From Octopus bimaculoides (lineage: Eukaryota), in assembly GCF_001194135.2 (NCBI RefSeq), contig NC_068985.1:65731088-65780036 (forward strand): a stretch of 48,949 bases of DNA, given 5' to 3'. The translations under genes were made by a program, and so were the position numbers. Below the pieces are notes generated by a model that did not search any database, was not told the origin of the DNA, and saw only the letters and a program-made list of their open reading frames with translations. Of this stretch, positions 10,231 to 45,023 are shown one piece after another. Position 1 is the first letter of the stretch. Each line of letters opens with the position of its first letter.

Positions 10231-10879
10231 TTACACGGCCAAATTGAATCCTTTCGTCCATTCTAAAACATCTGAGTCATGCATGCTGCCACTACTATTA
10301 CTTTTTGGAACCAAGGTAGTATTGTCACTTAGAAAACCACTCTTAGATGTGCGAGTATCCTTTTTTACTAGAGCGTAGTCATCTCCATTGACATAAAAAT
10401 GCTGAAGGTCACGAAATACGTCATCGTCACCTTTGCTTTCCTGGCTGTCCTTTCTTGTTAAAATGTCGGCATCAGAATTCTTCCGACCAGTGAAAGTATT
10501 ATCACCAATTTTCATGGTGCCCATGTCAGGATATTTATTCTTTTCCTGAGTTGAATAGTCACTTTCTGGAAATTCGTCACCAGTTTTAGAAAACTGAAAA
10601 ACATTGTCGTCCTTGCTAGTTGCAGAATCCATTGTCTTACCAGACTCATTTCCTGATGAAATTAAAGAACTTTTCTTTTTAATCTGCTTTGAATTGGAAC
10701 CAGTCTTTGAATCGTCGAGCAGATTATTTTCACTGTTCTTTGACCGACCATTCAGTGTTTCATTGTCTCCTTCACCAAAATTTTCTTTCAGGTACTGGAA
10801 TGATGCTAAGGGTTCGTTTATGGCTTCACTGCTAGAGCGTTCTTCTCTCTCTGTATTCGCAGCCAGGCATCGTCGACGT
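10231..10879 (-). CDS. Host gene terminal coding exon: cytoplasmic tail of a type I membrane protein
   Basis: Acceptor CCTAAACTTCACCTTTTGTAG|A (phase 2) continues the TM exon as R-RRRCLAANTEREERSSSE...FYVNGDDYALVKK...KGFNLAV*; 649 nt, stop TAA at 10233-10231; includes ORF-track entry 10231..10632. Confidence 0.85.
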
Positions 10880-11291
10880 CTACAAAAGGTGAAGTTTAGG
10901 CATAAGACAGGATCAGAAATTTTCAGTTGTTGCTAGGAGGCGGTTTTGAAGTTCCACATACAATCGCATTGGAAGTATTTCTGCAAAGATAGAGGACTTT
11001 CTAAGATTCAAGGAAGGAAATTTAATCGCAGTAAATCATTGCTCTGCACCATTGCAATAGTTCATGATACTCTGAAAGATCAGAACTGTATGAAACCATC
11101 AGTAATTTTTGACTAAATCCCTTTTTCTTCTTTTCTTCTTTTATTTTTATTTTTCATTTTTACTTTACTTTACCTAGAAATATTCATTTTAGTGGCACTG
11201 AAAACAAGAGGTAAACTTATGATTAAGTTGAGAATATGCATCAATTGCAAGGTGATTATGTTTCACAGTTTACTAGTAGTATTCTAATATC

Positions 11292-11463
11292 CAGTTCTAT
11301 ATTTAAGAGATGAGGAATTATGTACATTATTTACATTTGACGGATATTTGTCCTCATCGTGTTTGTTGTTTACACAACGTTTTGGCTGATATACCCTCCA
11401 GCCTTCATCAGGTGTTTTGGAGAAATTTCGAACCTGGGTTCTCATTCCTAAGGTATTTTTCGA
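11292..11463 (-). mobile_element. Penelope-type terminal repeat fragment with a mutated hammerhead
   Basis: Reverse complement of 11601-11739; core reads ACAC-CTGATGA-AGGCTG..CAGCC-AAAAC-GTT-GTGT (GAAAC changed to AAAAC). Confidence 0.7.
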
Positions 11464-11568
11464 TGCTGCTGCTGCCGCTGTTGTTGTTGTTGTTGTTATT
11501 ATTATTATCATTCAGATCACTGCCTGGAATCGAACTCGGAATCTTAGNNNNNNNNNNTAATAATAATG

Positions 11569-11600
<32 letters not shown>

Positions 11601-11739
11601 ATCGAAAAATACCTTAGGAATGAGAACCCAGGTTCGAAATTTCCCCAAGACACCTGATGAAGGCTGGAGGATAAATTAGCCGAAACGTTGTGTTAGCAAC
11701 AAATAAGATGAGGACAAATATCCGTCAAATGTAAATAAT
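11601..11739 (+). mobile_element. Penelope-type terminal repeat fragment carrying a hammerhead
   Basis: Homologous to 11292-11463 and 39275-39327; flanked by (AAT)n. Confidence 0.7.
11649..11694 (+). ncRNA. Minimal type I hammerhead ribozyme with intact core
   Basis: GACAC (stem I) CTGATGA A GGCT..AGCC (stem II) GAAAC GTT (palindromic stem III) GTGTT (stem I). Confidence 0.75.
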
Positions 11740-11968
11740 CTATTCTAATATTATTGAGAAAAGCATAAATGTCACAGGAATCCATTTATCTTACTCTTAA
11801 CAGTTTTGATCAAGCTAAATTATAATTGACTGCATGTCTATGTGTTTTGTAATTATATATAATGGTTAGTCGTATTGTGTATCACACAATACACAGAGAG
11901 TGCATGCTATATGTGGCTTATGTGCAATTTTTGTAGGAGTGTACGTTTTTTACTCGTCCTACTATTTC

Positions 11969-13333: not shown

Positions 13334-13339
13334 ATCTTA

Positions 13340-13818: not shown

Positions 13819-15972
13819 TGGAAAGGGACCAACAGCAAAGGCGGATTGGTTAGTGTTGAGTGCATAAACACTAATAGAAACGGAAATTATGTCAATATCT
13901 ATGTCTAAACTAAAGGATACACCACAATGTTCATCCTGATCTTGCAGAACAGGATGCATATATGGAAAATTGAAATTAAAAGCATTTTCGCCAATTAGTT
14001 TGTACCTTTGATTGGATACGCATGTAGTGATGTTTTTAAGGTAAACAAAGCAAAAACTTCTGAAAGGTAATGGGGTCTTCGGAGTTGGATTAAGTTGTCA
14101 TTCAATAAATGATCAGAAGTTAATTTTTGTTGCTCCAGTCGAAATTGGATCCTTTCTTACTCGAAAGTGATACTGAAGTAAAAGCTATTGCTAGTTAAGG
14201 TAATCGGTTATATGCTACCTTGCTTTTACTGGAGTTCATGACGATGTGATGTGTAGTCCAATAATTTGATTTGGTAGGCAATATATCTTCTGTGAATTTT
14301 CAACTTACATTTTTCTGTTAAAAAATAATATTCATTAATATGTTACGGTCATAAAAAATTATACGACTCATTTGAAACGTTCTAATATTTATGAATTTAA
14401 CAATACTAAAGCGACTCTCTAAAAATATTATTCTGGTATCCAGTTTTTAGATTAAACCAGATTGACAGAGGTTGAGGGAAAGTGATATACTTTTCATCCT
14501 TTTCCATCGATAAAACGAAGATTATTGTTGTTTAGTCCGAGGTCCTGAAAGAACAACTATGATCAAAGACGCTTCGACCAGGAGAATCCCGGCTAAAATG
14601 TCCTTTTTCTTTTGACATATAGGACATATATTTCTTGAAAAATCAAGTAACCGCAAAGAAAGTCCTGCTTTGGCCTAAATGTCGTGTAATAATATGAATA
14701 CATGATTTTAACAGCTTACAATAAAATTTGACAACTGTGAATAATTGTATTTTCTAATTTTAAACTTTTAAATCAGATGATCTTCAAATATGTTTTATGT
14801 AGGCAAGCCTATCAATAAGGATGATAGGTAGTGAACGACCAGTGGTGTTTTGACGATGACCAAAATACTTAACTTAACTCAACTGCCGAGTCATTAACTA
14901 CGAATCTACTGACTGTAAGGAACAGTTTTAAACGTTTTTCTGTGTACAAACTAATAGCGTAGACCAGTTTCCTATCTTGGGAAAATTTACCTTTCATTTT
15001 TTCAAAGGCATTGAGAAAGACTCAAGTTCAGAGAGAGAATGGAGAATGATAACGTTTATGTCTTTTCAAAGGTAAGTCGTGATATAAATAAAGTAAATTA
15101 GCAGAGCAGTTTTAATGCCTTGCGGTATTTTGCAATGTTTCGATTTGAAATCTAGTTTAGAGTCTTAATAGTAATAGTACCAACCTAATACTGAGGTCGA
15201 TATAATTGACTGATCCCTCCCTCACCAAATGTTTAACTTCGTGCCTCTATTAGAAATAAAATGATAATTTAAAAATATCACATGGACGTGCAATTCGTTT
15301 CAATTATGTTTATGTCTTCTAAAGAACAGTGTAATAAATTGAATTCGCTTATGGAAAGGATTAGAAACTGGGCTGCTTACTTGGAACCTCTTACATTGTC
15401 CACATATTTACAAATAAGGGTATATAGAGTGTAAATAAAGGTATAAATAAGGGTGTATGCTAATAGTCTCCTTAGCTAATCTTGAATGCATTTACTCTTT
15501 CAAAATTCTATCATGTAATTCATTAATTCTTTCAAAATTCTTTCAATTTTGGAACCTTATTCTGAAAACACTAGTTGTAGCAAAGACCTAAAAATGGTTC
15601 CCACAGGTTAACTGGTATTCTCGTTTCTTCACTTTCTTGCACTTCCATCATTCTTTAATGAACTCTAGTAGTATTTTTATTCTCTAATTCTTTCTTATCT
15701 CTGTATTTTCTTACACGAGTTTTTTTCTATTTGTTAAACATTTCTTATAAACTGTCATGAGTTTGTTATTCATACGAACTTCAACTGTTCGATTTTGATT
15801 GCAAATCGATCATTCAACAATGACAATTCAATTTTACTGTACCTAAGTTCAAGCCTCTTCCAGTATTCATTAAAAACTAACCTGCTCTAGATTATCTTCA
15901 TATGTTTACATTCTTTTTACACAATGGTCCGCAAGATACGGTCTTGTAATGGAAAGAAATTAAAAGAAGACT

Positions 15973-16100
15973 GGTGTGGTGGTGTGGTGTGGTGGTGTGG
16001 TGTGGTGGTGTGGTGTGGTGGTGTGGTGTGGTGGTGTGGTGTGGTGGTGTGGTGTGGTGGTGTGGTGTGGTGGTGTGGTGTGGGGTGGTGTGGGATGTGG
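15973..16100. repeat. (GGTGT/GGT)n G-rich tandem repeat
   Basis: Direct reading. Confidence 0.95.
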
Positions 16101-16139
16101 GGTGTTGTTGGTGTGTGGGGCAGGTGTGGCTAAGCACAA

Positions 16140-16470
16140 GTGTGGCTGTGTGATAAGCTTGCTTCATAACCACATAGTTCCAGGTTCAGTTCCACTGCGT
16201 GGCACCTTGGGCAAGTATCTTCCACTATAGCCTCGTGTCGACCAAAGTCTTGTGAGTGGATTTGGTAGACAGAAACTGAAAGAAGCCCATCGTGTATATG
16301 TGTGTGTGTTTGTGTTTGCCTCCTACTATTGCTTGAAGTGTTGATTTGTTTACGTCCCAGAAACTTAGCAGTTCGGCAAAAGTATTGTAAGTACTGGGGT
16401 CGAATCATTCAACTAAAAATTCTTCAAGACGGTACCCCAGCTTGGCTGCAGTCTAATGACTGAAAGAAGT
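16140..16470 (+). mobile_element. Long tRNA-head SINE
   Basis: GTGGCTGTGTG..GGTTCAGTTCCACTGCGTGGCACCTTGGGCAAG head; homologous to the minus-strand copy at 44341-44757. Confidence 0.75.
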
Positions 16471-16499: not shown

Positions 16500-17330
16500 G
16501 AACAATCCACAACTGTTTTGCTTTACTGTAGGTATGTGGATAACATTAATATTCTAGTTAGGACAAACTCTATTAACTGTAATGTAGAAACCGAGAGGAG
16601 CCTAAAGGAGAGCATCCAGCATGTAGCTAATTCCATCCACCAAAGTATCAAGGTAACTATAGATTATCCCACTAGGCACCTTAACAATAGACTCCCTGTC
16701 CTTGATACTGAACTTTGATTAGAGACTGTGAACAACAGAGTGCAACTCCCCCACTCCTATCACATGAAACCTATAGTTTCTAAATATTTTGTTCACAAGA
16801 ACTCAGTTTTGTCACACAACATGAAAATCAACATACTGACAGCAGACTTAGTTAGGATAATGAATAACGTGTTCCCACTATGCAAACCCTATAAAACAAA
16901 GAAACATGTACAGAACTTCATGCACCACATGCAATTCTCTGGATATGATCAGAAAGATAGGGTTTGGGTATACAGGGGAGCTAGAAAGAAGTTAGATAGC
17001 ATTATGTGTAATGAAACCAGTGGCACCTGCCTTAGATATAGAAATAAAGACTGGAATAGGATACAAAGAGTTTGTGACAAAGCAAACAAGGTAAACACAT
17101 GGTACAAGGCCGACAAATATCAAAGAGTGATATTTGTAGAGGCCACAACCCATGGAGAACTAGCTTGAAGATATAGGAAAGCTCTGAAGGAGGTTCAACT
17201 CAACATTAAGATCGTTGAAAAGCTAGGAGGCTCCATTAGATCACGACTATACAACAAAAAAAATGATTAAGTAAATGAGTGGAAATCAAACCGGTGAGTG
17301 TATTAAATAATAAGGTACTAAAAGAGAATG
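16500..17330 (+). mobile_element. Penelope-like element, RT C-terminal/thumb region, pseudogenised
   Basis: RYVDN, IDYPTRH..RLPVLD, KP..SK..V.KNS, MQFSGY..R, YRNKDW, VIFVEAT.HGELA motifs with in-frame stops. Confidence 0.75.
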
Positions 17331-17412: not shown

Positions 17413-17875
17413 NNNNNNNNNNNNNNNNNNNNNNNNNNNNNNNNNNNNNNNNNNNNNNNNNNNNNNNNNNNNNNNNNNNNNNNNNNNNNNNNNNNNNNNN
17501 NNNNNNNNNNNNNNNNNNNNNNNNNNNNNNNNNNNNNNNNNNNNNNNNNNNNNNNNNNNNNNNNNNNNNNNNNNNNNNNNNNNNNNNNNNNNNNNNNNNN
17601 NNNNNNNNNNNNNNNNNNNNNNNNNNNNNNNNNNNNNNNNNNNNNNNNNNNNNNNNNNNNNNNNNNNNNNNNNNNNNNNNNNNNNNNNNNNNNNNNNNNN
17701 NNNNNNNNNNNNNNNNNNNNNNNNNNATATATATATATATATATATATAAAGTTAAAACTTACTTGCAAATGGACGCGTGGCATTCGATAATATAATAAT
17801 ACAAATGATATGTGAGCATATGCATATATATATACATACATATATGTACATACCAACAGAATGAACATATAGGAA

Positions 17876-18345: not shown

Positions 18346-19393
18346 TTTTCTCTTAATTAATAAATAACTCGGACAAAATAAATTGGTTAATAGATACCAG
18401 GGTAGCAAAGATCACAGAATGACTGTGGTGTAACTCCTGTTTATGAGGTAGAAACTCCTTGTTATTTTGGGTACTTGAGTATATATAAAATTAATGAATG
18501 GAGTAAAACGCATATGTTAACTGCATACTTTTATTTCCAACATATGTTTCGAAGATTACAAATTATACNNNNNNNNNNNNNNNNNNNNNNNNNNNNNNNN
18601 NNNNNNNNNNNNNNNNNNNNNNNNNNNNNNNNNNNNNNNNNNNNNNNNNNNNNNNNNNNNNNNNNNNNNNNNNNNNNNNNNNNNNNNNNNNNNNNNNNNN
18701 NNNNNNNNNNNNNNNNNNNNNNNNNNNNNNNNNNNNNNNNNNNNNNNNNNNNNNNNNNNNNNNNNNNNNNNNNNNNNNNNNNNNNNNNNNNNNNNNNNNN
18801 NNNNNNNNNNNNNNNNNNNNNNNNNNNNNNNNNNNNNNNNNNNNNNNNNNNNNNNNNNNNNNNNNNNNNNNNNNNNNNNNNNNNNNNNNNNNNNNNNNNN
18901 NNNNNNNNNNNNNNNNNNNNNNNNNNNNNNNNNNNNNNNNNNNNNNNNNNNNNNNNNNNNNNNNNNNNNNNNNNNNNNNNNNNNNNNNNNNNNNNNNNNN
19001 NNNNNNNNNNNNNNNNNNNNNNNNNNNNNNNNNNNNNNNNNNNNNNNNNNNNNNNNNNNNNNNNNNNNNNNNNNNNNNNNNNNNNNNNNNNNNNNNNNNN
19101 NNNNNNNNNNNNNNNNNNNNNNNNNNNNNNNNNNNNNNNNNNNNNNNNNNNNNNNNNNNNNNNNNNNNNNNNNNNNNNNNNNNNNNNNNNNNNNNNNNNN
19201 NNNNNNNNNNNNNNNNNNNNNNNNNNNNNNNNNNNNNNNNNNNNNNNNNNNNNNNNNNNNNNNNNNNNNNNNNNNNNNNNNNNNNNNNNNNNNNNNNNNN
19301 NNNNNNNNNNNNNNNNNNNNNNNNNNNNNNNNNNNNNNNNNNNNNNNNNNNNNNNNNNNNNNNNNNNNNNNNNNNNNNNNNNNNNNNNNNNNN

Positions 19394-21385: not shown

Positions 21386-22535
21386 TATCTGTCGGTTGCA
21401 CACTCACATTTTATATCAGCATATGTATTTTTATATGATGATATTTCAGTTTACACTTTTGAGTATTATTTTTTAAATAATTTATTGTAATATGCTTTTT
21501 TTTTATTTCGCTAACTGTTATTTAAAAAAAACATTAAAGAATATATTAGACGCAACAATAGTACTAATAGTAGTTGTAGTTTTAATAAGAAGTAGTACTG
21601 GTGTTATATCTTAATTTCTAACACTGGTGTTCAATATTATGGATACTATATAATCTATATGAAAATAATGTAAAATAAAATAAATAGTATACTTAATATT
21701 GCCAGACTTTGAAAAGAAAAAAAAAAAAACAACGTAAAGGTAGCTATGTTAAAAATTAAGGAATAACCAGAAATAAGTGCTAAAATAGCAAGCAACAACA
21801 ATGGTTGCTTAGTTTTAAGATGTTCAGACCACTTGAGCAGTACTTCGAGCAAGTATTTTCCACCATAAGTTGTAAATATAATTTAGCAGAAAGAAAATTT
21901 ATTCAGCAACGCATGTCATCTTTAAGCATCGGCAAGAGAAAGCGGTATATCGGTGCTTTCGAGCAAAGACGTTTTGCGTTATGGATTCTGATGGATTCAC
22001 AGTTGTTCGCTTTCCGTTTTCGCCATATAAATTTGATGGACTAGTGAATGAACTTTTGGAAACCTATCATCACGACGCTGTTATGATAAAGAAATTTAAC
22101 TGCAACAGTTTAATAATGGCTATTTTTAGAGTTTTTCGTTTTTATACTATTTCTATTTATAAGAAAAAAAGTTATGTTATAGAACTTATCTATATAACTA
22201 ATTGCATATTTGTTAAACTGTTGCTGCATTGCTATATATAATTACTGTAAGCAATGGAGTTTATTTGACGTAGGTGCATGATCTGCCAGAAATAGCAAGC
22301 ATCTCTTTTGCGCAAGCTTTTACATCATAAAAAAGGAAACACATAGTGGCTAATATAGCCTACGCTTGAAAGTGGTTGGGATGATCAGAACTGGAACGCC
22401 ATTGAGGTCTGTTCATTGAAGGTCTTCCCGCGATTAAACAATAACGATGACAATAACATGCAATATTACAACTTTACTTCCGAAATACTGATTATCAGGG
22501 CTGCATCACTAGAACAGCACTCCGTTGACACTTAC

Positions 22536-22611
22536 CGCTTCATGCTGGCAATCAGTGCTGTCAACAAAATTATCACGAGACATGCGAGAATTACAATTCC
22601 AGCTATCAGTC
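22536..22611 (-). CDS. Host gene transmembrane exon
   Basis: TTTTTCAG|GA CTG ATA...AAG CG|GTAAGT; 76 nt, phase 1 to 2; GLIAGIVILACLVIILLTALIASMKR. Confidence 0.9.
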
Positions 22612-22719
22612 CTGAAAAATAAAATAAAAATATATGAGTTTAAAAATTTTCATAGCATTAAAAAAAATAAATGGATGTGGTAATTTTATCCCAAACTATT
22701 ACTTTTAAGAAATCTATAG

Positions 22720-24070
22720 AAATGATATTGATATCCACTGTCAGACCTTCATTTCAGTAAAAATATAAGGCATGGAATTTGGCATAGATAAATGTGCATC
22801 ATTAGTCACAAAAAAAAGGAGCAGGTAGTCGCCAGTGAAGGCATCCAATTACCAGATGAACAGACATTAATAATATCACTGAAAGAAGGAGAGAGTTATA
22901 AGTATCAAGGAGTGTTAGAATCTGACAGAGTACTAACTATGAAAATGAAAACAAAGATTGAGGAATACATTAGAAGGGTGAGGAAGCTAATGAAGTCAAA
23001 GCTAAATGGTCCAGATCTAGTGAAGGCTGTAAATACTTGAGCAGTATCGTAACTTAGATATTCAGCAGCTTTTGTAGATTGGACCACATATGAGTTAGCA
23101 AAAGTAGACAAAAGAACTAGGAAGGAATTCAGTATGAATGGAGGACTCCATCCAAGAGCAGGAGTAGCAAGATTATACTTACCTAGAAAGGAAGGTGGGA
23201 GAGGGTTAATATCAGTAGAAGACTGTGTGGAATTAACTAGAATAGATACAGGCTCCTAAGTAGGTAATAGTGAAGAAAGTTTAAGAGCTGCTAGAGTCAC
23301 AACAGGACATAGGGAATCAAAAAAAGCCAAATGAAGTTAAAAATCAGAAAAAAGAACAAAAGTTATCTGACTGGTAAGAAGAAGGCTTTGCATAGTAGAT
23401 TCCTAAAGACAGCTACAGGAAATTGTAATAAGACATGGTTATGGCTACAGAAAGGAAGGCTGAAAAGTGAGACAGAAAGTTTGTTAGCAGCATAAGATGA
23501 AACATTAAGGACTAATTGAATACAAGCCAAGATAGACAAAAGACCAATTCGATTCCCAGTGTAGGTTATGCAAATCAAAAAAGGAAAGTGTTGCTAATAT
23601 AGTAAGTGAATGTAGTATGCTGGCACAAAAAGAATACCAGAAAAGACATGACAACCTTGGGAAAGTAATCCACTAGAAGTTATGTAGAAAGCTAGGATTT
23701 GATCATATTGATAAATGTTAATACTAGAATGTAAGAAATATAAGATATTGTAGGACTTTGACCTTCAGACAGACAGAGTAATAGAAACTAGAAGGCCTGA
23801 TTTAGTAGTAGTAGATAAAAAGAATAGAAAGTACCAGATAATTGACTTTACAGTACCAAATGATGAGAAAGTCAATATGAAAAGTTTAAAGTACCAGGGT
23901 CTAGCCATTGAATTACAGAGACTAAGGAAAGTGAGGGTAAAATGAATCCCTGTAGTTATAGGTGCACTGGGAACTATTCCTAAAGACTTGAACAAATGGA
24001 TAGAGGAAATAGTCTTAAAACCCAGTTTAGTACAGCTCCAGAAAACAGTGTTGTTAGGGAACATACTGGC
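22720..24070 (+). mobile_element. R4/Dong-like non-LTR retrotransposon, 3' half, decayed
   Basis: GMEFGIDKC, YKYQG, SKLNG, LHPRAGVARLYLPRKEGGRGL, SEC.MLAQKEY.KRHD, RRPDLVVVD, IPVVIGALG. Confidence 0.85.
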
Positions 24071-24074
24071 TAGC

Positions 24075-24627
24075 GTTTGCGTGAACTGGCAGCAGAATGG
24101 GTTTATTCCCAGATCTGTTCGCCGGAGAGTTGTAACGCTGGTCAGGAAGGACCTGGACAAGGGGGATAATATAGATAATTTCAGGCCCGTCACTCTGCTG
24201 AACTCAGAGATGAAGATTTTGGCCAAAGTGTTGGCAAAAAGATTGACGTGTGTCGCGGATGGCCTGATCGGAGGGGCACAAACCTGTGCAGTCCCCGGTA
24301 GAACCATCCAGGATAATCTTCATCTTATACGCTACACTGTAGAAGGGTATGGAAAAAAAATCTGGTAAAGGCGGGGCACTGGTCCATTTAGACCAAGCTA
24401 AAGCATTCGATAGGGTGGACCATCGGTACCTGGTTTCTGTTCTCGCGCGGTTCAGACTGGGTCTTGGTTTCCTCAAGTGGATCATACAGTTGTACGATAA
24501 CATCGACTCGATCGTTCAAGTGAATGGCTTTTTCTCGAAGTCGTTCTGCATCAAACGGTCGGTTCACCAAGGGTGTCCGCTCTCTCCGCTTTTGTACATG
24601 ATGGCCCTGGAGCCATTACTTAGAAAG
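24075..24627 (+). mobile_element. L1/Tx1-like RT fragment
   Basis: NFRPVTLLNSEMKILAKVLAKRL, QTCAVPGRTIQDN, LDQAKAFDRVDH, VHQGCPLSPLLY..ALEPLL; one frameshift. Confidence 0.85.
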
Positions 24628-24629
24628 TG

Positions 24630-26285
24630 CGTGCCAGTTGTAATTTTGTGTTGGTGATTTTTTGAAATTTTTTTTGTGCTGCTTTGCAGCGGTTTGGGTG
24701 TTTATGTGTGTTTTGTTTGTGCTTTCTCTCCTCGTAAGAGAAGAGACAGCTGGTTGAAGAATGTCTGAAGACAGTTATAGTTACTCAGACATATCATCAT
24801 CCGAGAAGGAGTTGTTGGAGGCAGTTAAGACAATGGACCAGAAACTGATAAAAGAGAAGAGGAATTTTGCTGATGCAGCAAGGTGTAAGGAAACAGAAGT
24901 GGATATCGAGGAATTAGGAAGACACAAAGAAGAAATGAACTGAGATGGGTTCGAAGTGAAGCTGTCGCCCCCGCAAGAGGTTAAAAACGGAATGAGGGAA
25001 AAGACGATAATCAATCGAACCTTTTTGATAAATAAAGGAAGAATAGACGTCGTCACGACAGAACAAATAGAAAAGGCGTTAAAGCAGATTTGGGAAGACA
25101 TAAGAGGTTCAACATTTGGAACAGTAGAAGTGAAGTTTCGTAATGCAGCAGCAGCAAGGACACATGCAGCATCGACAATTCGGAGCGAAGAAGTGGTGCT
25201 GTTGCCCATGTATAGAGGCATGAGAGCATAAAGGGTCACCGTTGAAAGAATCCCACTGGAGATTGATGTGACCTGGGTGGCAGATGCGGCCCTCTTTGGC
25301 AATGAGGACAACATAGTGGTGCTCCAGGCCAAGAAAAAGAGTGCGTCAACTTGAGAGGTCAATCAGTGGAGTCCAGGGTTCAAAAGAAACGTTGGAAAAG
25401 ATTACGGAAACAATAATTATGGAAGAAACAATTATGACTGTCAGGGTGGAAGGAAGAGTTCCACGCTGCTTTAAATGTGGCCAGAAGGGACACATAAGAG
25501 CAGAAAGTACATCAAAGCCAAGAAAACCAGAGGAAAAGGGACCAGAAAATACGGAAGAGAAGATAGAAGAGAGCCACAGAAAGGAAGTAACCGAAAAAGA
25601 AAAGAAAGTAGGGGAAATAAATGGGAAAATAAATGGGAAAATGTGACAGGAAAAAAACGAAAAAAGGCAAGTGAACTAAACTGCAAACCCCATTCTACAC
25701 CCATCCCACCCACACCCTCTCAGACCCACCCACTCCCTGCAGACACTAGGCCTATCCATTCCCATCTGACACAAAAACAAGAGGCAAATAAATACAAAGA
25801 AACCCAAAACTCCTCCCCCGAGTCAAAAAAGAGAAGGAAAAAGTGTAGGATTTATATGTTGCTTAGCGACGAACTGTTAAGGGATTTGGCGGAATGGGAC
25901 ATAAAGTGTATTGGAACTGCGGGGTATGATAACGTGGAGGAACATCACTTGTGTGTAATACCAGATAAGAAGCAAGAGGAAAAAATACAAGAGTATATGG
26001 CTGGATTTTATTTTTGGGAGGTGGACTGCAGCTGGAGCTCATTCCCAGACTTTACGACGCACGATGGGTGGTTGGAGGAAACAGGTATCGATGTGTTAGA
26101 GGGGTCAGGATTTAAAAGGTAGAAAATGGGGCCGCTCGTGGGTGGGGCGAGTGGTTCCATTTCCATTTTAACATTTTCATTTCTTCATACATTATAACAT
26201 TCATTTCTATTTTTTATATATGTTTTATGTCCCACATGTTTTGTTTTGTCACCTCTATGTTAGCCCGCATGGGTAATAAAAAAAC
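24630..26285 (+). mobile_element. L1/Tx1-like 5'UTR + ORF1 (CCHC knuckle) + 3'UTR/poly(A), no ORF2
   Basis: T/G-rich leader, ATG at 24761, PRCFKCGQKGHIRAE knuckle, E/K-rich tail, T-rich 3' region ending AATAAAAAA; frameshifted. Confidence 0.65.
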
Positions 26286-31878: not shown

Positions 31879-32848
31879 CACTGGACAATAAAGATTTTCC
31901 TACTGGGGTAAAAGCATGTGTTTTAGATTAAATCGAGGATGCTGAATCCGCATTCAGAATTGTTCTAGCATGTCAGGATTTTGAGTTATGCACATGCGCA
32001 AGATTATAACTATACTTTCGATTAGATATAGGCCGTATTATAAAATTTACTAAAATGAAAGTTGTCTTAATTCAAAAAGTAAAATTTGGTGCAGAGAAAA
32101 GTGACGCAAAACTTAAAGCAGGCATTTTCATTGAACCCGAGATCAAAGAATTGATATCTGATAGCAAATTCGGAAGTAAACTAAGTCCAGTTAACCTGAC
32201 GGCATGGGATTCATTTGTATTAGTTGTACAGAACTTACTTGGAAAACATAGAGCTGAAAACTATGTTGGTTTAATAAACAACATGCTAACAGCGTATGAA
32301 AGAATGGGATGCCGAATGTCCCTTAAAATGCACTTCTTGCATTCTCATCTCGATTCTTTTCCAACAAATCTTGGTGCCGTTAGTGATGAGCATGGTGAGA
32401 GGTTCCATCAGGACATATCTGAGATGGAAATGCGGTATCATTGACGGTTCAATCCACGCTTGATGAGTGACTACCGCTGGTTCCTACAACGGGAGACCAG
32501 CACGACGCATAAGCGCAAGAGCAAGTGTCTCAAACATTTCTGAGATGAGCATATAAAAAATATAGTGAGTATTCCCTCAATATAAATATACTATGTACCA
32601 TTATATTATAATACTATTTGCGTTGAACATAAATTTACTATATACAGTACTAATACACTATTATAATAATTATTTAGCTTGAATTTAATTATTCCTGATT
32701 CTAATATAGTATTAATATATAATTATGCGCATAACTCAAAATCCCGACGTGCTATAGCAATTCTGAGTTCAGATTCGAAATCAGCGTACTCGATTTAGTT
32801 TAGTACAGCACCATTTGCAGACAATAAATCTTTTTTTGTTGCCCAGTG
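31879..32848 (+). mobile_element. Chapaev3-like (CMC) DNA transposon, internal-deletion derivative
   Basis: CACTGGACAA... / ...TTGCCCAGTG ends with extended subterminal inverted similarity (31930-31996 versus ~32710-32800); ORF 32055-32444 has SLKMHFLHSHLDSFPTNLGAVSDEHGERFHQDI. Family name from memory. Confidence 0.65.
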
Positions 32849-32851: not shown

Positions 32852-34922
32852 ATAATGAAAGAAGTTGATCAAGCACTTGGAAAACTGATACAACTCCTTG
32901 AGAATAATAGAGAAAATGCCCTTGGAGTGATTAATCAACTCATTTACTTAGCTGCTTATGTTGTAACTCAGTGATCGGTATTAAAATTAGAGATAGATAA
33001 AAAAAAAAGTGCAATGTACACAAACAACCTGCATGGATGGAAAGAATAAACCGGAAAATAATTCAACTAAGAGCAGATATATCCTTTCTACTTGAAGCAA
33101 TCAAAGAGAAAACTAATAAACCCAACAAAATAATAAGAATAATAAGAATAAACATGACCTTTACATGAAAACAAATTGAAATCCTCAAACAAAAACTACG
33201 ATTAAAAACCAAATGACTGGCAAGATACAAAAAACGCTCAGCATTCCATAGACGAAGTATACTATTCAAGGAGAACACAAAAAATTCTACAGGGAACTGG
33301 GAAAAATATCATTATTGTGATGACATCTCCTTCCCAGCAGCAAACTGAAGATTTTTGGAAAAACATCTGGAGTAATCCAAAGGAGTTTAATCAGAATGCA
33401 CATTAGGTAAAGGACACAGAAGAGGCCAATGCCCACCTCAAATATGAAGAAGTGAAAGCAGCGCTCGTCAAGTCAAAGAAATGGAAATCCCCTGGTATAG
33501 ATAAGATTCCAAATTTTTGGCTAAACTTTTTAATGAGCACCAACCACAACTCAGCCGTAGGACTCAATGAAGTCATGTTCAACCCTACGAAAGCCCCAAA
33601 GTGGCTTACAGAAGGAATTACATATCTCTTACAAAAACAGAAGAAAATGATAACCCTCCCTCCCCCACCAAATACCGACCCATAACATGCCTTACCACCA
33701 CATATAAACTATTAACATCTATAATTGCGAATAGAGCATATGAATTTTGGGACAATAGGAAATTATTCTCAGTGGAAGAAAAGGGATGTAAAAGGAGTTC
33801 ATATGGATGTAAAGACCAATTACTGATTGATAAAATGGTCATTGAAAATTGCAAATCTAAACACAGAAACCTTAGCACCGCTTAAATATATTACAAGAAG
33901 GCTTTTGACAGTGTCCCCCAAGCATGGATCATCAAAGCCATGGAAATTTACAAGATAGCTCCAACATTTGTGAACTTTCTAAAAGTAATCATGAATTCGT
34001 GGAGAATCACCCTCATTTTAAACCATACACAAGGATACACCACCTCACCAGACATTAATATCGCTTGTGGTATCTTTCAAGCCAGCAATAATAGGTCTTG
34101 AAAGTACCTTAATACAAGAAGTGAAGTGCTCTTGCAAACTGCCCTGACGCATGAAGATTCCAAGCCAGCTTCAGTCATGAAGCTTAATCAGAAATTTAAA
34201 AAGTCACTTGGTCTACAAGTTAACAATAAGAATGACCAAAAACGTCCAAATACTGACAGACATGCCATTGCTTCTTCTGATTTAGAAATTAACAATCAGA
34301 AAGACCAAAGAGATTCAAATAGTGACAAACCTATCATTGATGCAAAAAACATCAAACAAAAAGCAAAAAAGGCTTGCATGAATAATATCGAAGACAACTA
34401 GAAAGGTACACTCCTGCATGGAAAATACCCTATCTGCTTATCCAAACCAGATACTGATAAAAATCTAACACACCAATCGCTACAACAGAGGAACTTGTCT
34501 GTTAATAGATATGTCTGTCCTGCAAGATCAAAATGTCTCAAGAAAGGAATGCGAAAAGCTTTCTCATTATAAAGATTTGCAAATTGAAATCATAAAAATG
34601 TGGAAGCTTAGTACCAGTAGTAATTGGTGCGTTGGAAATGATAAAGAATGGAGTTGAGAAGTATATTAAGCATCTCCCTGGTAACTCAAATCTCCGCAAA
34701 TTACAAAAGATAACCTTGATGGGTACAACCCATATACTACGGAAAGCACACTCCATCTAAAACAGAATAAATGTGGTGATAATTTTAGCATGCATTGCAA
34801 AACGAAAGTGCTCTTGCTATTCTTGGACTCTAGAGAATGCCCGGTATTAAGGCAGCTGAAATAAAGTTATAATGAAAAGAAACCATAAATGATGATGATG
34901 ATGATGATAATAATAATAATAA
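32852..34922 (+). mobile_element. R4/Dong-like element: RT N-half and RLE end, internally deleted
   Basis: KSPGIDKIPNFWL, KYRPITCLTTTYKLLT, GCKDQLLIDK, KKAFDSVP, then KYP..., KDLQIEI, VIGALE; (GAT)n(AAT)n tail. Confidence 0.85.
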
Positions 34923-34923: not shown

Positions 34924-37900
34924 TGTGGCGAGAGTCGTTGGCACCCTGTGGGATTGGAAGAATGGACTAGCCGAACTCTTATAAAGAGTAGCGTATTGGT
35001 TGAGATGCAGAAGTCGTAGAGAGTTCATGGAAGTCGTAAGAAATCGGTGAGATCATTGAGAGTTTGTATTTACTGGAATAACACGTTTAGTGGAGTAATG
35101 TGAAGTACATCGATATGTGAAGTACAAAAATAGTTCAGGTTCGTTTTCGCCAGACGGCGTAGCAAACACAATTGTAGAATTTAGTTATAACCCAGAAGAA
35201 GGTATTACCTTTTCTGTATATTCCCGAAGATATGAAGAAATCTTCGAAGGAATGCAAAAATTGGACAGACAATGAAAAGGTACAACTACTTTTGAAAAAA
35301 ATTATCCCCTACAGAGCACGAAAAATACTGTAACTACATTCTCCTAAAAAAAAAAAAAGCAAAAAAAAAAAAAACGTGAAATTTATCGAAAATATTCAGT
35401 TGTGTCCATCCCCGCTTCGTGAAATCTGTACATCCAACGTATAAAAGGTTGCAAAAATGGCGTCGAGTTTATTCGAAGCTTACGTAGAATGTTAACATTT
35501 TCTGATACAAAATCAAAGAAAAATTAGCTGAAATGGAAGACCTATTAGCCTCCATGGTGCATTTGCAACAGTAACAGCAGCAACAGAAACAACAATTACA
35601 GCAGCAATTATAACAACAACAACAATGTTGAAGTCCAAAAATAGTTCAGGTTCGTTTTCGCCAGACGGCGTAGCAAACACAATTGTAGAATTTAGTTATA
35701 ACCCAGAAGGTATTACCTTTTCTGTATATTCCCGAAGATATGAAGAAATCTTCGAAGGAATGCAAAAATTGGACAGACAATGAAAAGGTACGACTACTTT
35801 TGAAAAAAATTATCCCCTTCAGAGCACGAAAAATACTGTAACTACATTCTCCTAAAAAAAAAAAAAGCAAAAAAAAAACAAAAAAAAACGTGAAATTTAT
35901 CGAAAATATTCAGTGAGAGAACTTCCGTATTCAATACACGCTGGGGGTGTTGGAATTTAGTAAAAGAATTGGATGTAAAAGCTCACATTGCAGAGCAGAA
36001 AAAGAAAGGTCGAACGAAAAAAATTCGGGAAAGGTTGTCTCAACAGAAAGTCTAGGCGAGCCTCACAAAAGCATGTTTGTGTACATAAAAATAATTAATA
36101 TGTAAGTGAAGCTACAGCTAGATACAGACAGTGATATTACAATTATTAACACTAACACATGGAAAAAATAAGAAAGCCTACATTAATGGAAACTTTAAAA
36201 ATTACGAAAGGTGTATCAGTAAAAAAAGGTTACATTTCGGAGTAAAACCTTGAAAGCAAAAGTTTTTGTGTTAAACAATGCAACAAACTTGTTCGGTACT
36301 GTTCTTTAAAAATATAAATGTTTTTTTTTTCCTCCAGTAAAAAACAAGTCGTCAGACGAATTGAAATAAAAAATATTTTTCCTGAAGTTCTGTCCGATAA
36401 ATTAGGTCTATGTACCAAGACAAAGGTGTGTTTTCAAATAAAGTAAAACGCCATACCAGTATATAAACCAAAACGAATGGTTCCCTTCGCAGCGATGAAG
36501 CAAGTCAGGAAGAGCTAGAGAGACTAGAAAAAATTGGAATAATCCAAAAAGTGGAATATTCTAAATGAGCAGCACCAACTGAGTATATTAAGATAAAAAA
36601 TAATAAACTCAGAGTGTGCATTGATTTTTTCCACTAGTTTAAATGAATGTGCCTCTATCCGCTACCTACTCCGGAGGATATTTTTGCGAAAATAAGCGAT
36701 GGAAAGATATTTTCCAAATTGGATCTCTCGGACGCGTACCTACAAATTAGAGTAGACGATGAATGCTCGAAATACTTAACAGTTAACATATATAAAGGAC
36801 TGTATAAGTACAACAGGTAACCACTTGGTTTAAAAGTCGCACCAGCAATTTTTCAACAGATTATGGATGCAATGTTAGCGGACTGTGAATTCGCAATTCC
36901 ATATCTGGATGATATACTGGGATCAGCACGTCGAGCACGTAAAATATGTATTTGAAAAAATTAAGGATGACGGCTTCAGTGAAGAAAAGTATGCATTTTC
37001 TTACTGGAAATAAGATATTTAGAACAAGTCATTGACAGAAATGGACGACGACCTGACCCGTCGAGGGCAGACACAATAAAAAATATGCCTCATCCGAATA
37101 ATATAGCATTACAAGCATTTTTAGGACTGGCAAATTATTACCAAAATTATATTCCAAATATGCATAAGGTTAGGGCTCCACTGAATAATTTGCTGAAAAA
37201 AGATATGAAATGGCATTGGTCAGAAAATTGCCAAAAGGCGTTTGATGACATTTAAAAATATATTAATATCTGATTTGTTATTAGCTTACTTTGATCCTGC
37301 AGCGGAGATTGTTGTAGCTTCAGACACTTCTGAGTACGGTGTAGGAATAGTAATGTTACATAAATATAAAGATGGCTCCATGAAGGTGGTGGTTCATGCC
37401 TCACGTTCTCTGATATCAACAGAGAAAACTTATAGTCAAATCGGAAATGAAGCTCTAGCGATCATTTTTGCCGTGAAAAAATTTCACAGATTTTTGCACG
37501 GTGAAAGTTTTTGGCTACAGACTGATCAACGATCATCATTATCGATGTTTGGGTCAAAAAAAGTAATTCCTACCTATATTGCTAATAGGTTGCAACGCTG
37601 GGTTACGATATTATTAAACTACGATTTCAAGATGGAGTACATACTATCCAAGAAATTAGGCCATGCGGATTGTCTATCAAAACTGATTAAAAAAAAAACA
37701 CGGAACTATTTGAAGATACTGTGATTGCCGCTTTGCGAGCGGAAAACGAAATTAAAAATGTTTTGTGTGACGTCATTCGTGAACTGCCAGTTGCGTTACC
37801 AGACATAAAATTAAAATCGGAGAACGATAAATTCATTATTAGAAAGAAAGAAACACTGAAGGCTAAAGGAAATAAAAATATGCACAACACAAATGCCAAC

Positions 37901-37960
37901 CATTTTTTACTGTGTGACAATGTGTTGACGTATGCACAAAGAATCGTAGTGCCACGGGTC
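34924..37960 (+). mobile_element. Ty3/gypsy LTR retrotransposon, decayed gag-pol
   Basis: PBS-like TGGCGTCGAG (35457), Q-rich gag start, RT (KLDLSDAYLQ, APAIFQQ, YLDD), RNase H (ASDTSEYGVG, EALAIIFAVKKFH, RLQRW, HADCLSK); integrase missing. Confidence 0.85.
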
Positions 37961-37964
37961 CCAC

Positions 37965-38410
37965 TAGTAGAGTGTAAATCAAGACATGACAACGGTGGCC
38001 AATATCTACACTGGTTAATAAGTCGGCATTATAAAATCAAAACTGCTGACAGATGGTGTAAGTACCACCCTGAGGTTGTAACTGAGGGAGAAAATGTAAC
38101 GTTTCTTTGGGACTTTCGATTACACACAGACAGAACCATCAAAACTTATAAACCGGATATTGTTGTGAAAGACCAAAACAATAAAGTCTGTTCATTGATC
38201 GACATGAATATTTCTTGCGATCATAATATCTCGGCAAAAGAATATGACAAGCTCAGAAAATATAAAAATTTGCTAATTGAAATCGAAAGAATATGGCATC
38301 TCAAGACGATTACAATACCAGTGATTGTACTTGTGCTAGGAATTATAAAAAAAGGAATTGAAGTTCATGCAAGAAGTGCAAAAGATTGTTTTAACTGGTA
38401 CGTAACACTG
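37965..38410 (+). mobile_element. R4/Dong-like RLE fragment
   Basis: SRHDN..YLHW, LWDFRLHTDRTIKTYKPDIVVKD, KYKNLLIEI. Confidence 0.85.
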
Positions 38411-38614: not shown

Positions 38615-38645
<31 letters not shown>

Positions 38646-39274: not shown

Positions 39275-39327
39275 TGTTGTGTTAACAACAAACAAAATGA
39301 AAACAAATATCCGTCAAATGTAAATAA
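39275..39327 (+). mobile_element. Truncated third copy of the Penelope-type terminal repeat
   Basis: GTTGTGTTAACAACAAA...ACAAATATCCGTCAAATGTAAATAAT matches 11687-11739. Confidence 0.75.
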
Positions 39328-39329
39328 TA

Positions 39330-40470: not shown

Positions 40471-40939
40471 TTAGTAGTAGTAGTAGTAGTACTTAACATA
40501 GACACACACAGGGATATACGCATGCGCAAATAAAGACACATACAATAGGAATACAAAATGGCAGATCTTTAGTGAGGAGAGACACACAAAAAAGAAAGAA
40601 AGCAAAAGACCACTGATGAGGTCACAGAAGTATGACGAAAGAACTCTATCCGAAATCTAATTAATATAAAAGCAAGTGAACACCAAATATATAGTGCGTG
40701 TGTTTTTATTGGGTAAAGTGGCAATATGACCATCCCCAAATACAACAATATCTGTTTCAACACACGAATTCACATCAAGAATCTTGCAAATNNNNNNNNN
40801 NNNNNNNNNNNNNNNNNNNNNNNNNNNNNNNNNNNNNNNNNNNNNNNNNNNNNNNNNNNNNNNNNNNNNNNNNNNNNNNNNNNNNNNNNNNNNNNNNNNN
40901 NNNNNNNNNNNNNNNNNNNNNNNNNNNNNNNNNNNNNNN

Positions 40940-40976
<37 letters not shown>

Positions 40977-41059
40977 TAGGAACCTACTTATGGATATACT
41001 ATCTTTTGGAGAGGCCTACCCAAGGGTCAGCGTAGAGAATATGGTGTTGAATTTGCTCT

Positions 41060-43920
41060 CAAGAATACATTAGTATCCTCCATTGCGGAGCTTCCAAGTG
41101 GTATATCTGAGCGGATCATGTCATGTCGTATTAAACTGACAAAAGGTAGGTTTCTTACCGTTGTCAGTGTTTATGCACCAACAATGTTCCATTCTGATGA
41201 AACTGTAGGACAGTTTTATGATGATATAGCACTACCAATTTCTGACAAACTGGTCATATTGGGAGATTTCAATGCAAGAGTTGGAAAGGAGTATGTTTCA
41301 TGACCTATTTTTGGTCGACATGGGATTGGAAAATGCAATAAAAATGGAGTAGCTCTTTTGACATTTTGTACTGAGAATAATCTGGTTGTTACCAATATTC
41401 TGTTTAAGCAGAAATACAAATATAAAACCACCTGGATGCACCCAAGATCTAAGTACTTGCATCCCGTAGATTATATTCTGATCAGAAAATGTGATATGAG
41501 AGACGTTTCTAGCGTTCGGGCCATGAGAGGAGCAGAAAGTTGGACGGACCATCATCTAGTGCGTGGAAAAATAGATTTTTCGATAATGCCTAAAAATCAA
41601 CAGTCTGGTCCTAAGGTACCCAAAAAGTTAAATGTTGTAAACTTTAAATTATCAAGCAACTTGCAAAGATTCCACGATGCTATAGAAAGTATCAATCTTG
41701 ACACAAACAATCTATGGGAAGATTTCAAAACAATAGTATTTCAGGCTGCAAGTTCGTCAGTGGGATTTAAATCACATAAGTCCAGTGACTGGTTCTCAGA
41801 GAGATCAGCAGGAATTCATAATCTACTTTTAGAAAAACAAAACTTAGGCAGTACACTTCTTTCTCAGTCCTTGAACCCCGGTTCAAACGAAGCTTACAGA
41901 AAGCTGAAAAGGAAAGTGCAGACGGCTCTAAGGAAAATTAAACAGGAATGGTGGAATGAGCAAAAGAGGCACAAGAAGCAGCTAATAGAAATGATGCCAA
42001 GGGTTTGTACTCTTATGTTAAGGAGGTATATGGCCCCAAATCTTCTTCAATAGCTCCAATGAGAACAGCAAATGAACGTTTTCTTCTGATTGACACCGCT
42101 TCTATTCATAAGCGTTGGGTAGAACATTTTTCCGCACTTCTGAATAGACTATCATCCGTTGACATGTGACGATAGAAAAATTGAACACCTTCCAGTTATA
42201 GAAAAGATGGCATTTGAACTAACTCTAAGTGACATTTATTTAGCTGTGAATAAGCTGAATAACAATAAGTCTCCAGGGTCTGATGGAATCTGTGCAAAAG
42301 TCTTGAAATATGTTTGAACTCTTAAATATATTAATTTGTCACTGTTGGAGAACTGAGAAAGTACCTCAAGACTTGATTGATGCCATTTTAGTCTCCTTGT
42401 ATAAATCGGGGCGAAAATCGCAATAAGTCTCCAGGGTCTGATGGAATCTGTGCAGAAGTCTTGAAATACGAGGGTGAAAAAATGTTGGAACTCTTAAATA
42501 TATTAATTTGTCACTGTCGGAGAATTGAGAAAGTGCCTGAAGTTGGTTTGATGCCATTTTAGTCTCCTTGTATAAATCGGGTCTGGGTCTCAGTGTGGTT
42601 TTCGTTCCTCCAGGAGCACAGCTGATTGTATCTTTACTGTCAGACAGTTACAAGAGAAGTGCATTGAACAGAATCGTACCCTATACCATTGATTTGTTGA
42701 TCTGAGCAAAGTATTCGATACTGTTAATCTGAATGCTCTGTGGCTAGTTCTAAGGAAAATAGGTTGCCCAGAAAAATTTGTAAACATGATTAGGGCTTTG
42801 CATCAAGATATGAAAGCTAGAGTTAACTTTGGTGGTAGGCTCTCTGAATCTATTGCTGTGGAAAATGGAATAAACCAAGGAGACCTTGATGCACTCACCC
42901 TCTTTGCAATATACTTTGCTGTTGTGTTGTCATATGCTTTTCAGAACTCTGAGGAGAGTATTTACATAGAATATCAAACAACAGAGAATGTTTTTAACCT
43001 GTCCAGACTGAAATTCAAAACGAAGGTTTTCATTCCTTCATTAGGGAACTTTTGTATGCTGACGATTGCGATCTTGTTAATCATTCTGAAACAGGTCTGC
43101 AGTCTCTTGTATCTGCATTTGACTCGGTTTGTGATGATTTTGGCTTGACCATCAACTTGAAAAAAAGAAACAGTTGTAATGCATCAACCTGCGTGTGGTG
43201 CTGTTTGTAACTCCACTAAAATTTTTGTAAAGGGTAAGTTACTTGAGGTTGTCGATTCGTTCGTCTGAAAGCTCTGTTCAAAATGATGGAAATCTTGATA
43301 CAGAAATACAGCTGCGAATTCAAAGGGGGGCAAAAGCATTTGATGGCTTGGAGTCATGTGTTTGCTGCCAGCGACATATAAATAAGAATACAAAGCTGGC
43401 TCTTTACAAATCATTTGTCTTACCATCTCTGTTGTATTCCTGTGAAACTTGGACTTATTATGAAAAGCATTTTAAATTGTTAGAAAAATTCCACCAAAAA
43501 TGTCTTCATCGCATTAAAAAAATTAAATGGAGTTCTTTTACTCCAAACACAGATGTCCTTGATTCTGCAGGCATCACCTCAATTAAAGCTATGATTTTGA
43601 GGAACCAGTTGAGATGGTGTGGCCATATTGTTCGAATGGCAGATGAATGCATGCCGAAACAGCTGTTTTATGATGAGCTTGCAGAGAGGAAAAATATCGG
43701 CGTAAACTTAAAAAAGAAAGTTTAAGGATGGCATAAGGACTACTATCAAGTCACTTGAAATGGTTCCAGAAGAAATAGAAACCCTCGCTTCAGATCGAGT
43801 TGGATGGCGAACAAAAGTGTGGAATGGAATGAAAGCGTTTGAAGAGGCCAAGATGACACAAGTAACACTCAAAAGAGATCTAAAGAAGAATGTAACGATC
43901 GAGGTGAATGACAATGACCT
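41060..43920 (+). mobile_element. RTE-like LINE, near-complete but decayed EN-RT ORF
   Basis: SVYAPT, LGDFNARVG, TTWMHPRSK, DYILIR, KSPGSDGI, KVFDTV, GINQGD, LRNQLRWCGHIVRM, LASDRVGWR; multiple stops and frameshifts. Confidence 0.9.
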
Positions 43921-44340
43921 TNNNNNNNNNNNNNNNNNNNNNNNNNNNNNNNNNNNNNNNNNNNNNNNNNNNNNNNNNNNNNNNNNNNNNNNNNNNNNNN
44001 NNNNNNNNNNNNNNNNNNNNNNNNNNNNNNNNNNNNNNNNNNNNNNNNNNNNNNNNNNNNNNNNNNNNNNNNNNNNNNNNNNNNNNNNNNNNNNNNNNNN
44101 NNNNNNNNNNNNNNNNNNNNNNNNNNNNNNNNNNNNNNNNNNNNNNNNNNNNNNNNNNNNNNNNNNNNNNNNNNNNNNNNNNNNNNNNNNNNNNNNNNNN
44201 NNNNNNNNNNNNNNNNNNNNNNNNNNNNNNNNNNNNNNNNNNNNNNNNNNNNNNNNNNNNNNNNNNNNNNNNNNNNNNNTATATATATATATCTGCATAT
44301 GTATGTGTGTGTGTGTGTGTGTGTACGCGCGTCTGTGCTT

Positions 44341-44757
44341 ATCTTTTTCTTGCTTCAGTCATTGAAATGCGGCATGCTGAGGCACTCATTTCAAGGATTT
44401 AGAACAAATCGATCCCAGTACTTATTTTTAAAGTTTGTTACTTATTCTATTGGTCTCTTTTGCTGAACTAATACCTTATAGGAACGTAAACAAACTAACA
44501 CCGGTTGCCAAACAGTGAGGTGTGTACAAACACAAACTCAAGGACAAAGACACATACATATATACACACAGATGTGTGTTTGTGTGTGTGAAAAACGGAT
44601 TTCCACAGTTGTTTCCGTCTACAAAATTCACTCACAAGGCATTGGTCGGTCGAAACTATTGCAGAAGACTCTTGCCCAATGTAACACACAGTTGGACTGA
44701 GCTTGAATTAGTGTGTTTTCAAAGCGAGCTTCCTAACCACACAACCATGCATGTGCT
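44341..44757 (-). mobile_element. Long SINE, near full length
   Basis: Reverse-complement homology to 16140-16470. Confidence 0.7.
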
Positions 44758-44858
44758 TAGACATTTACAATCACTAGAGACAATAATCTGAAAAATTAAT
44801 CGCATTAACATTCTGTTATCGTTATACTGTATTAATTATACAAGTTGAATCATCTCAC

Positions 44859-45023
44859 CTTTATTACTGACATCGCTTTTGGCAATTTCGTCTTTATTTA
44901 TTTCTGATGTTGTTTTGATTTTATCAGTTGTCTGAATTTGAGTTGTTTTCTTCTCAATTGTTTCCGGACACGTGTCTATCCACGGAAGCGCAGGTTTGCT
45001 GTGGACATCATCAGTTGTCAGCG
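44859..45023 (-). CDS. Host gene Thr-rich stalk exon, most 5' exon found
   Basis: TTTCAATTTCAG|CG CTG ACA...AAA G|GTGAGA; 165 nt, phase 1-1; LTTDDVHSKPALPWIDTCPETIEKKTTQIQTT...SDVSNK(D). Adjacency to the 29.8 kb exon is inferred from phase only. Confidence 0.75.

Follow-up and report, generated by a model that had tools for sequence, protein, structure and literature searches.

Identity and exon structure of the gene

The window analysed here is a stretch of 48,949 nucleotides (nt) from the genome of Octopus bimaculoides (contig NC_068985.1); it is AT-rich, with a G+C content of ~36%, and is interrupted by nine runs of N. Its positions 10231-45023 are the 3' 35 kb of LOC106872169, a gene of ten coding exons that spans 126 kb in GCA_001194135.2, and they hold coding exons 6-10. 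An earlier note on this DNA had read five minus-strand exons with GT-AG borders, compatible phases and 1181 nt without an internal stop, which was confirmed to the base (165+240+51+76+649 nt; phases 1-1, 1-1, 1-1, 1-2 and 2-stop; no in-frame stop). The joined five-exon peptide is 100% identical to residues ~344-736 of XP_014774538.1, the "uncharacterized protein LOC106872169 isoform X1" of O. bimaculoides with 736 amino acids (aa), and is recovered by tblastn as five collinear minus-strand blocks. Identical exon translations with matching order and strand thus assign the exons to this gene. The note had, however, described the gene as hidden and as consisting of five exons, and neither description holds: the five are the exons 6-10 named above, and RefSeq (XP_014774538.1 to XP_014774543.1, five isoforms) and UniProt (A0A0L8HA04, named "CUB domain-containing protein") already carry exactly this model, which does not differ from the window exons and is entered there without a function. 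We are highly confident that the span is the 3' part of LOC106872169 and encodes a type I CUB membrane protein, for which a mechanism is proposed below. The coding exons of the window are the following.

45023-44859, minus strand: coding exon 6 (exon 1 of the earlier note), 165 nt, phase 1-1, atttcag/CG...AAAG/gtgag; post-CUB linker, (T)LTTDDVHSKPALPWIDTCPE..., in which a W and a C are invariant, and first part of the Thr-rich stalk; residues 344-398.
29843-29604, minus strand: coding exon 7, 240 nt, phase 1-1, ttctag/AT...AGAC/gtgag; 80-aa Ser/Thr-rich stalk cassette, residues 399-478, 100% identical to isoform X1.
27270-27220, minus strand: coding exon 8, 51 nt, phase 1-1, ttttcag/AC...ACAG/gtaaa, matched by tblastn; juxtamembrane stalk, HTSVSSQTGMFGKEIIT.
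22611-22536, minus strand: coding exon 9, 76 nt, phase 1-2, ttttcag/GA...AGCG/gtaag; transmembrane helix GLIAGIVILACLVIILLTALIASMK(R), with a GxxxG motif.
10879-10231, minus strand: coding exon 10 with the proximal acceptor, 649 nt including the TAA stop (10231-10233), ttttgtag/ACGT; (R)RRRC and the long cytoplasmic tail ending in ...DSDVLEWTKGFNLAV, residues 521-736, 100% identical to isoform X1.

The terminal open frame (10234-10932, minus strand) reads ...FC/RRRRCLAAN...GFNLAV-stop, and the acceptor at 10879 gives it phase 2. The transmembrane (TM) exon was placed by a scan for hydrophobic stretches with CG or AG directly before a GT at their end, for which 22611-22536 was the one credible candidate; exons 7 and 8 were placed by homology and their AG/GT borders then read directly. 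An Rfam scan of the window gave no match.

Direct protein searches with the tail or stalk peptides of the window returned prokaryote-style open reading frame (ORF) calls of other cephalopods and never the RefSeq protein. Among these, the TM and tail peptide found three ORFs (P0001, P0002 and P0003; 87, 53 and 48% identity). The contigs with the most distant tail ORF (48%) are spliced transcripts that also hold an upstream ORF of 514 aa, in which a signal peptide and a Cys-rich ectodomain precede a stalk and the same TM helix, and it was by searching with this ectodomain ORF of transcript contig L003 that the annotated proteins were reached. Orthologues are LOC115211776 of Octopus sinensis and Argonauta hians, CAI9722334-7 of O. 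vulgaris and CAE1311499/501 of Acanthosepion pharaonis. LOC106872169 is thus already annotated. It encodes a CUB-domain type I membrane protein that is restricted to cephalopods and functionally uncharacterised, like many other lineage-restricted surface proteins of these animals. A reading from sequence only nevertheless recovered its exact exon-intron structure over 35 kb of gappy DNA rich in transposable elements.

Evidence that the exons are coding and correctly joined

Five gaps lie in the span, the introns are full of retroelement remnants and three of the five exons are short. One could therefore suppose that chance ORFs, fragments of transposable elements or loci mis-scaffolded across gaps had been strung together here and that the true exons lie in the runs of N. 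This explanation is essentially refuted. The ratio of non-synonymous to synonymous substitution rates (dN/dS) against Argonauta is 0.28, 0.42, 0.91, 0 and 0.19 for exons 6 to 10, with all four longer exons far below 1; the value of 0.91 for exon 8 comes from 16 codons only, and that of 0 for exon 9 from 24 of 24 identical residues at a dS of 0.74. None of the exons matches a family of transposable elements. The ten coding exons recur, with unchanged order and orientation and with an orthologue of exon 8 among them, in the Argonauta hians locus (contig L012, 52 kb, no N). Nucleotide similarity between the window and this locus is collinear and, besides short repeat matches, limited to three islands: exon 6; exon 9 and the first ~100 nt of the intron behind it; and exon 10 together with ~200 nt on its 5' side (conserved block 10165-11082).

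The five runs of N (11548-11557, 17413-17726, 18569-19393, 40792-40939 and 43922-44279) are all intronic: the intron after exon 6 contains two of them and the intron after exon 9 three. None comes closer than ~350 nt to an annotated exon, and no reading frame spans an assembly gap. In the decapodiform transcript contigs L003 and L004 and in the ORFs P0029 and P0032 (724-727 aa) the protein runs continuously from the stalk through the TM helix into the tail, and at both junctions that correspond to gap-bearing introns (SNK/DLPP and ASMKR/RRRC) the decapodiform ORFs are gap-free and carry no extra residues. The ten-exon layout of Argonauta, the collinear islands and these gap-free orthologue junctions argue against a hidden exon or a mis-join.

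Ectodomain

The protein consists, in this order, of a signal peptide, Cys-rich module 1, a Thr-rich linker, module 2, a divergent CUB domain, a Ser/Thr-rich stalk, the TM helix, a poly-Arg stop-transfer segment and a disordered tail. Its N-terminal half, with the signal peptide, the two Cys-rich modules and the divergent CUB fold, is encoded beyond the window. The CUB fold ends one residue before the product of exon 6, no upstream coding exon was found within 45024-48949 (tblastn of the isoform X1 protein), and the part encoded in the window begins with the residue that follows the CUB domain and runs to the stop codon. The N-terminus (MRNYLLIIQIAGILTGVV...) reads as signal-peptide-like; together with one 24-aa segment with a grand average of hydropathy (GRAVY) of 2.8, followed by KRRRR, it identifies a type I single-pass protein. 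The earlier note had deduced a stalked, receptor-like type I protein with its folded domains upstream of the window, and the full-length protein, with its ectodomain and the RRRR that follows the helix, bears this out. Its suggestion that the protein may be lineage-specific is supported by the profile search described below.

The assignment of the CUB fold comes from structure prediction. An AlphaFold2 (AF2) model of residues 160-346 reached predicted local distance difference test (pLDDT) values of 76-91 over residues 237-346 and left module 2 unfolded (pLDDT <50); its input alignment included two proteins with canonical CUB domains, and only the CUB part of the model is trustworthy. The best 50 matches of a Foldseek search of the PDB were all CUB domains, with a best E-value of 3e-6 and a template modelling score (TM-score, target) of ~0.6, among them those of C1r, Kremen, PCPE-1, spermadhesins, TSG-6, neuropilins and cubilin. 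All seven matches of a profile of residues 237-346 against PDB sequences were the CUB2 domain of MASP (MASP-1/3) or C1s, albeit weak (best E 0.01). The AF2 and Foldseek results together support a CUB beta-sandwich.

An exhaustive profile search among 1.84 billion representative proteins returned cephalopod sequences only, apart from two weak distant matches, LOC106154093 of Lingula anatina (XP_013383791.1) and a protein of 635 aa (P0038), with E-values of 2e-4 and 7e-4. The family is probably specific to the cephalopod lineage. Besides a canonical Pfam CUB domain, XP_013383791.1 has a Thr-rich stalk, a TM helix and a SUEL_Lectin match that stays below threshold (26.8 bits, cut-off 31.4), and hhalign aligned it to the octopus family with a probability of 94.8% over module 2 and the CUB domain. 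Both distant proteins are likewise uncharacterised. They resemble the octopus family in the succession of a lectin-like module, a CUB domain, a mucin-like stalk, a TM helix and a tail, but have one N-terminal module instead of two, a CUB domain with both disulfides and unrelated tails.

This relationship raises the alternative that the two Cys-rich modules are SUEL lectins, binding rhamnose or galactose, and that the protein acts, like EVA-1/EVA1C, as a co-receptor in guidance or adhesion that binds carbohydrates. The Lingula relative, in which the SUEL-like segment is followed by CUB domain, stalk and TM helix and which aligns with module 2 and the CUB domain, speaks for it, as does a strand of the form ...(F/Y)(V/I)Y.C or Y(I/V)CM at the end of both modules that resembles the C-terminus of SUEL domains. 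The best PDB match of module 1, although weak (E 1.1), was Plasmodium P113, which we take to have a rhamnose-binding-lectin-like N-terminal fold; PDB sequence and profile searches with module 1, module 2 and the tail gave nothing significant. However, module 2 alone aligned to the Lingula SUEL-like segment with an hhalign probability of 33% and module 1 with 0.5%, no cephalopod sequence matched Pfam SUEL_Lectin (PF02140), module 2 was not folded by AF2, and no match to an EVA1/FAM176-type tail was detected. A keyword search of the literature for SUEL and CUB was uninformative. We regard a lectin co-receptor of this type as improbable and keep to a divergent CUB protein with two Cys-rich modules.

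Stalk, transmembrane helix and tail

The stalk comprises 151 aa with 27.8% Ser+Thr and 4.6% Pro and has no predicted secondary structure. It is followed by the hydrophobic segment GLIAGIVILACLVIILLTALIASM, by K-RRRR-C and by a tail of ~216 aa. This product matches the Thr/Ser-rich stalk, hydrophobic helix, RRRRC and tail length of the earlier note; its description of the tail as acidic stands as to the sign of the charge and has to be toned down as to its extent, the hydrophilic tail being only mildly acidic (D+E 38 versus K+R 33, net charge -5, isoelectric point 5.3). An AF2 prediction of the full-length protein from an alignment of seven sequences, of too low confidence to serve as a model (mean pLDDT 33), has a helix at residues 490-530 and a tail without predicted secondary structure.

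No other part of the protein is as strongly conserved as the TM helix, which carries its GxxxG motif at G496-G500. Its sequence does not vary among the octopods of the comparison (O. bimaculoides, O. sinensis, O. vulgaris and Argonauta) and has 88% identity to that of decapodiforms, compared with 48% for the tail and 34-41% for the rest of the protein. The tail is variable except for 75 invariant columns, which are grouped in three blocks: SFQYLK, DDVFxDxxHFYVNGDDYALVxK and the last 15 residues, DSDVLEWTKGFNLAV. The tails of O. bimaculoides and O. sinensis (exon 10, 10300-10330) are without a short segment, ..SGIY(T/N).., that another octopod (P0001), Argonauta (P0006) and all decapodiforms compared possess; the deletion costs them an otherwise conserved tyrosine.

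Instead of an autonomous receptor, the protein could be an auxiliary or co-receptor subunit in the manner of NETO1/2, SOL-1 or LEV-10: the TM helix and the CUB domain would attach it to a multi-pass channel or receptor, whose trafficking or gating it would tune, and the tail would be mainly a synaptic or PDZ anchor. Besides the GxxxG-bearing helix that outranks the tail in conservation, the juxtamembrane CUB fold, with the CUB domain of GluK2-Neto2 at rank 46 of the Foldseek matches, and the hydrophobic, PDZ-ligand-like C-terminus are consistent with this alternative. Against it, Pfam detected no LDLa domain, Pfam and the profile search revealed no sequence similarity to NETO, SOL or LEV-10, there is no known partner, and a long tail with conserved tyrosine motifs suits an adaptor-docking receptor equally well. 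An auxiliary subunit of this kind is unlikely, though worth bearing in mind, and we continue to interpret the protein as a type I receptor-like protein with a docking tail.

Alternative splicing of stalk and tail

Two changes in the architecture of the protein, skipping of a stalk exon and replacement of the long tail, arise by alternative splicing, which the earlier note did not cover. Exon 7 is skipped in isoform X2 (656 aa) of O. bimaculoides, O. sinensis and O. vulgaris, of which P0019, P0008 and P0018 lack exactly this segment. The tail is changed at the 3' end by the following elements, which are listed together with a conserved intron stretch.

10980-10880, minus strand: extension of exon 10 (101 nt) from a distal acceptor, ctttgcag/AAATAC, exon start at 10980; its frame-shifted peptide RNTSNAIVCGTSKPPPSNN ends at a stop at 10925-10923 and gives the short-tail isoform X3 (P0014) with a tail of 18-19 residues.
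11197-11170, minus strand: alternative 3' exon of isoform X4, (R)ATKMNISR-stop, annotated; outside the Argonauta-conserved block 10165-11082.
14314-14305, minus strand: candidate start of the 3' exon of isoform X5 (P0017), (R)KM-stop, by pattern only, as the single match to AG/R-AAR-ATG-stop in the last intron; outside the Argonauta-conserved blocks.
22435-22535 (~100 nt), minus strand: conserved intron stretch directly 3' of the TM exon (blastn); candidate splicing-regulatory sequence. The blastn island 22435-22622 aligns to positions 46652-46838 of the Argonauta contig with 78% identity.

The distal acceptor and the short-tail peptide are conserved in Argonauta and in the decapodiform genomic contig L001, and the decapodiform transcripts L003 and L004 join the TM exon straight to the distal-acceptor segment. 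Retention of the last intron in these two transcripts was considered and rejected: isoform X3 and the conserved upstream acceptor speak for splicing, and intron retention would not produce this joining because the TM exon is >10 kb away in the decapodiform genome. The octopod-decapodiform split dates the conservation of the tandem acceptors to an estimated >250 million years. The protein CAE1311499.1 of Acanthosepion pharaonis (P0005) reads ...ASMRRNPPNTIPCGTTKPPPPRNAAQLRRRSLAD... and thereby joins the short-tail segment to the long tail in one frame. The transcript ORFs P0029 and P0032 contradict this model, which appears to be misannotated through a mis-join of the tandem acceptors.

Repeats and other features of the window

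The introns of LOC106872169 contain decayed retroelement ORFs on the opposite strand, with matches to RVT_1 fragments, to a reverse transcriptase (RT)-RNase H domain (E 4e-24) and to an endonuclease like that of long interspersed nuclear elements (LINEs) followed by an RT.

23946-24654, plus strand: decayed retroelement ORF.
37209-37721, plus strand: decayed retroelement ORF.
40980-43722, plus strand: decayed retroelement ORF.
32010-32441, 33571-33882, 37691-38410, 41304-42050 and 16719-17165, plus strand: long frames without a Pfam match.
15972-16118, last intron: 13-nt tandem repeat (TGGTGTGGTGGTG), 11 copies.
16184-16298, adjoining the 13-nt repeat: suggested dispersed repeat.
45712-45882 and 48799-48949, intron upstream of exon 6: microsatellites (CTAT)43 and (ATATG)30.
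1200-1750 (plus strand) and 2000-4900, 3' of LOC106872169: degenerate low-complexity tract of (ACTCACTCATTCA)-like units, then of the reverse-complement type (GAGTGAATGAGTGA).

On the minus strand, the 13-nt repeat reads as an open frame rich in Thr, Pro and His, which one might take for a stalk exon. The segment next to it matches several sites of the Argonauta locus, which suggests a dispersed repeat. The low-complexity tract, which is long and ends at a gap of 990 nt, makes the GC skew flip sharply from -0.44 to +0.65 and gives rise to many spurious open frames of the type 'THSLTHS'.

Proposed mechanism and comparison with known systems

We propose that the ectodomain, with its CUB domain and Cys-rich modules, has a binding partner outside the cell and that the stalk, presumably O-glycosylated, spaces the ectodomain from the membrane, the stalk length being set by the exon-7 cassette. 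The near-invariant GxxxG helix would drive self-association or association with a partner in the membrane. The tail would dock cytoplasmic adaptors through its three invariant short motifs, among which the DDVFxDxxHFYVNGDDYALV block holds YxN and YxxPhi-type tyrosines and the C-terminal ...GFNLAV forms a hydrophobic, PDZ-ligand-like end. The choice between the two acceptors of the last exon, 101 nt apart, may then decide between a signalling-competent long form and a form with a tail of 18-19 aa, which would bind outside the cell without signalling or would signal differently. All four parts of this mechanism, ligand binding, TM association, adaptor docking and the splice switch, we infer from sequence. 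A more specific version, in which the GxxxG helix makes the receptor an obligate partner, for example of a lineage-specific channel or receptor, and signalling is switched by the conserved acceptor choice between the long adaptor-docking tail and the tail of 18 aa, is distinctly improbable and put forward as speculation.

Several points weigh against the interpretation as a CUB-domain receptor of this kind. Pfam found no family in any of the seven cephalopod orthologues and no CUB match (PF00431) even at E<=10; the UniProt name must rest on a method other than the Pfam CUB model. In an alignment with the CUB domains of Lingula and P0038, the octopus domain has the first Cys pair (C244-C273) and lacks the second canonical disulfide. 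The likeness of the tail blocks to tyrosine-based (SH2, AP-2) and PDZ docking motifs is a resemblance of pattern only, and the low pLDDT of the tail may owe something to the shallow alignment of seven sequences. For the exon junctions of the octopus gene no transcript contig from octopus turned up; they appear sound from the RefSeq model, orthologue transcripts and conservation. A literature search by locus and accession found no paper, experiment or expression data for LOC106872169. For further study, three features can serve as guides: the TM helix, which is far more conserved than the ectodomain; the three invariant motifs of the tail; and the deeply conserved choice of tandem acceptors by which the tail is lost.

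Three known systems invite comparison. EVA-1/EVA1C, a Slit/Robo co-receptor with two SUEL lectin domains and a TM helix, shares with the octopus protein two Cys-rich N-terminal modules and a single TM segment. It has no CUB domain, however, its tail is dissimilar, and the octopus modules are at most candidate SUEL domains. NETO1/2, SOL-1 and LEV-10 are likewise single-pass CUB proteins with a functionally important TM or juxtamembrane region, and NETO carries a C-terminal PDZ-type anchor. The octopus protein does not belong to this group, as it has no LDLa domain, one CUB domain only (no second by Pfam) and no detectable homology. The Wnt/Dkk co-receptors Kremen1/2 (Kringle-WSC-CUB-stalk-TM-tail) have Kringle and WSC domains, which Pfam did not find in the octopus protein and which place it outside the Kremen family; there is no similarity outside the fold, and the tails are unrelated. 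Nevertheless, Kremen CUB domains were among the best Foldseek matches (ranks 2, 4, 5 and 7), and Kremen and the octopus protein have in common a type I topology with one membrane-proximal CUB domain, a linker, a TM helix and an unstructured tail.

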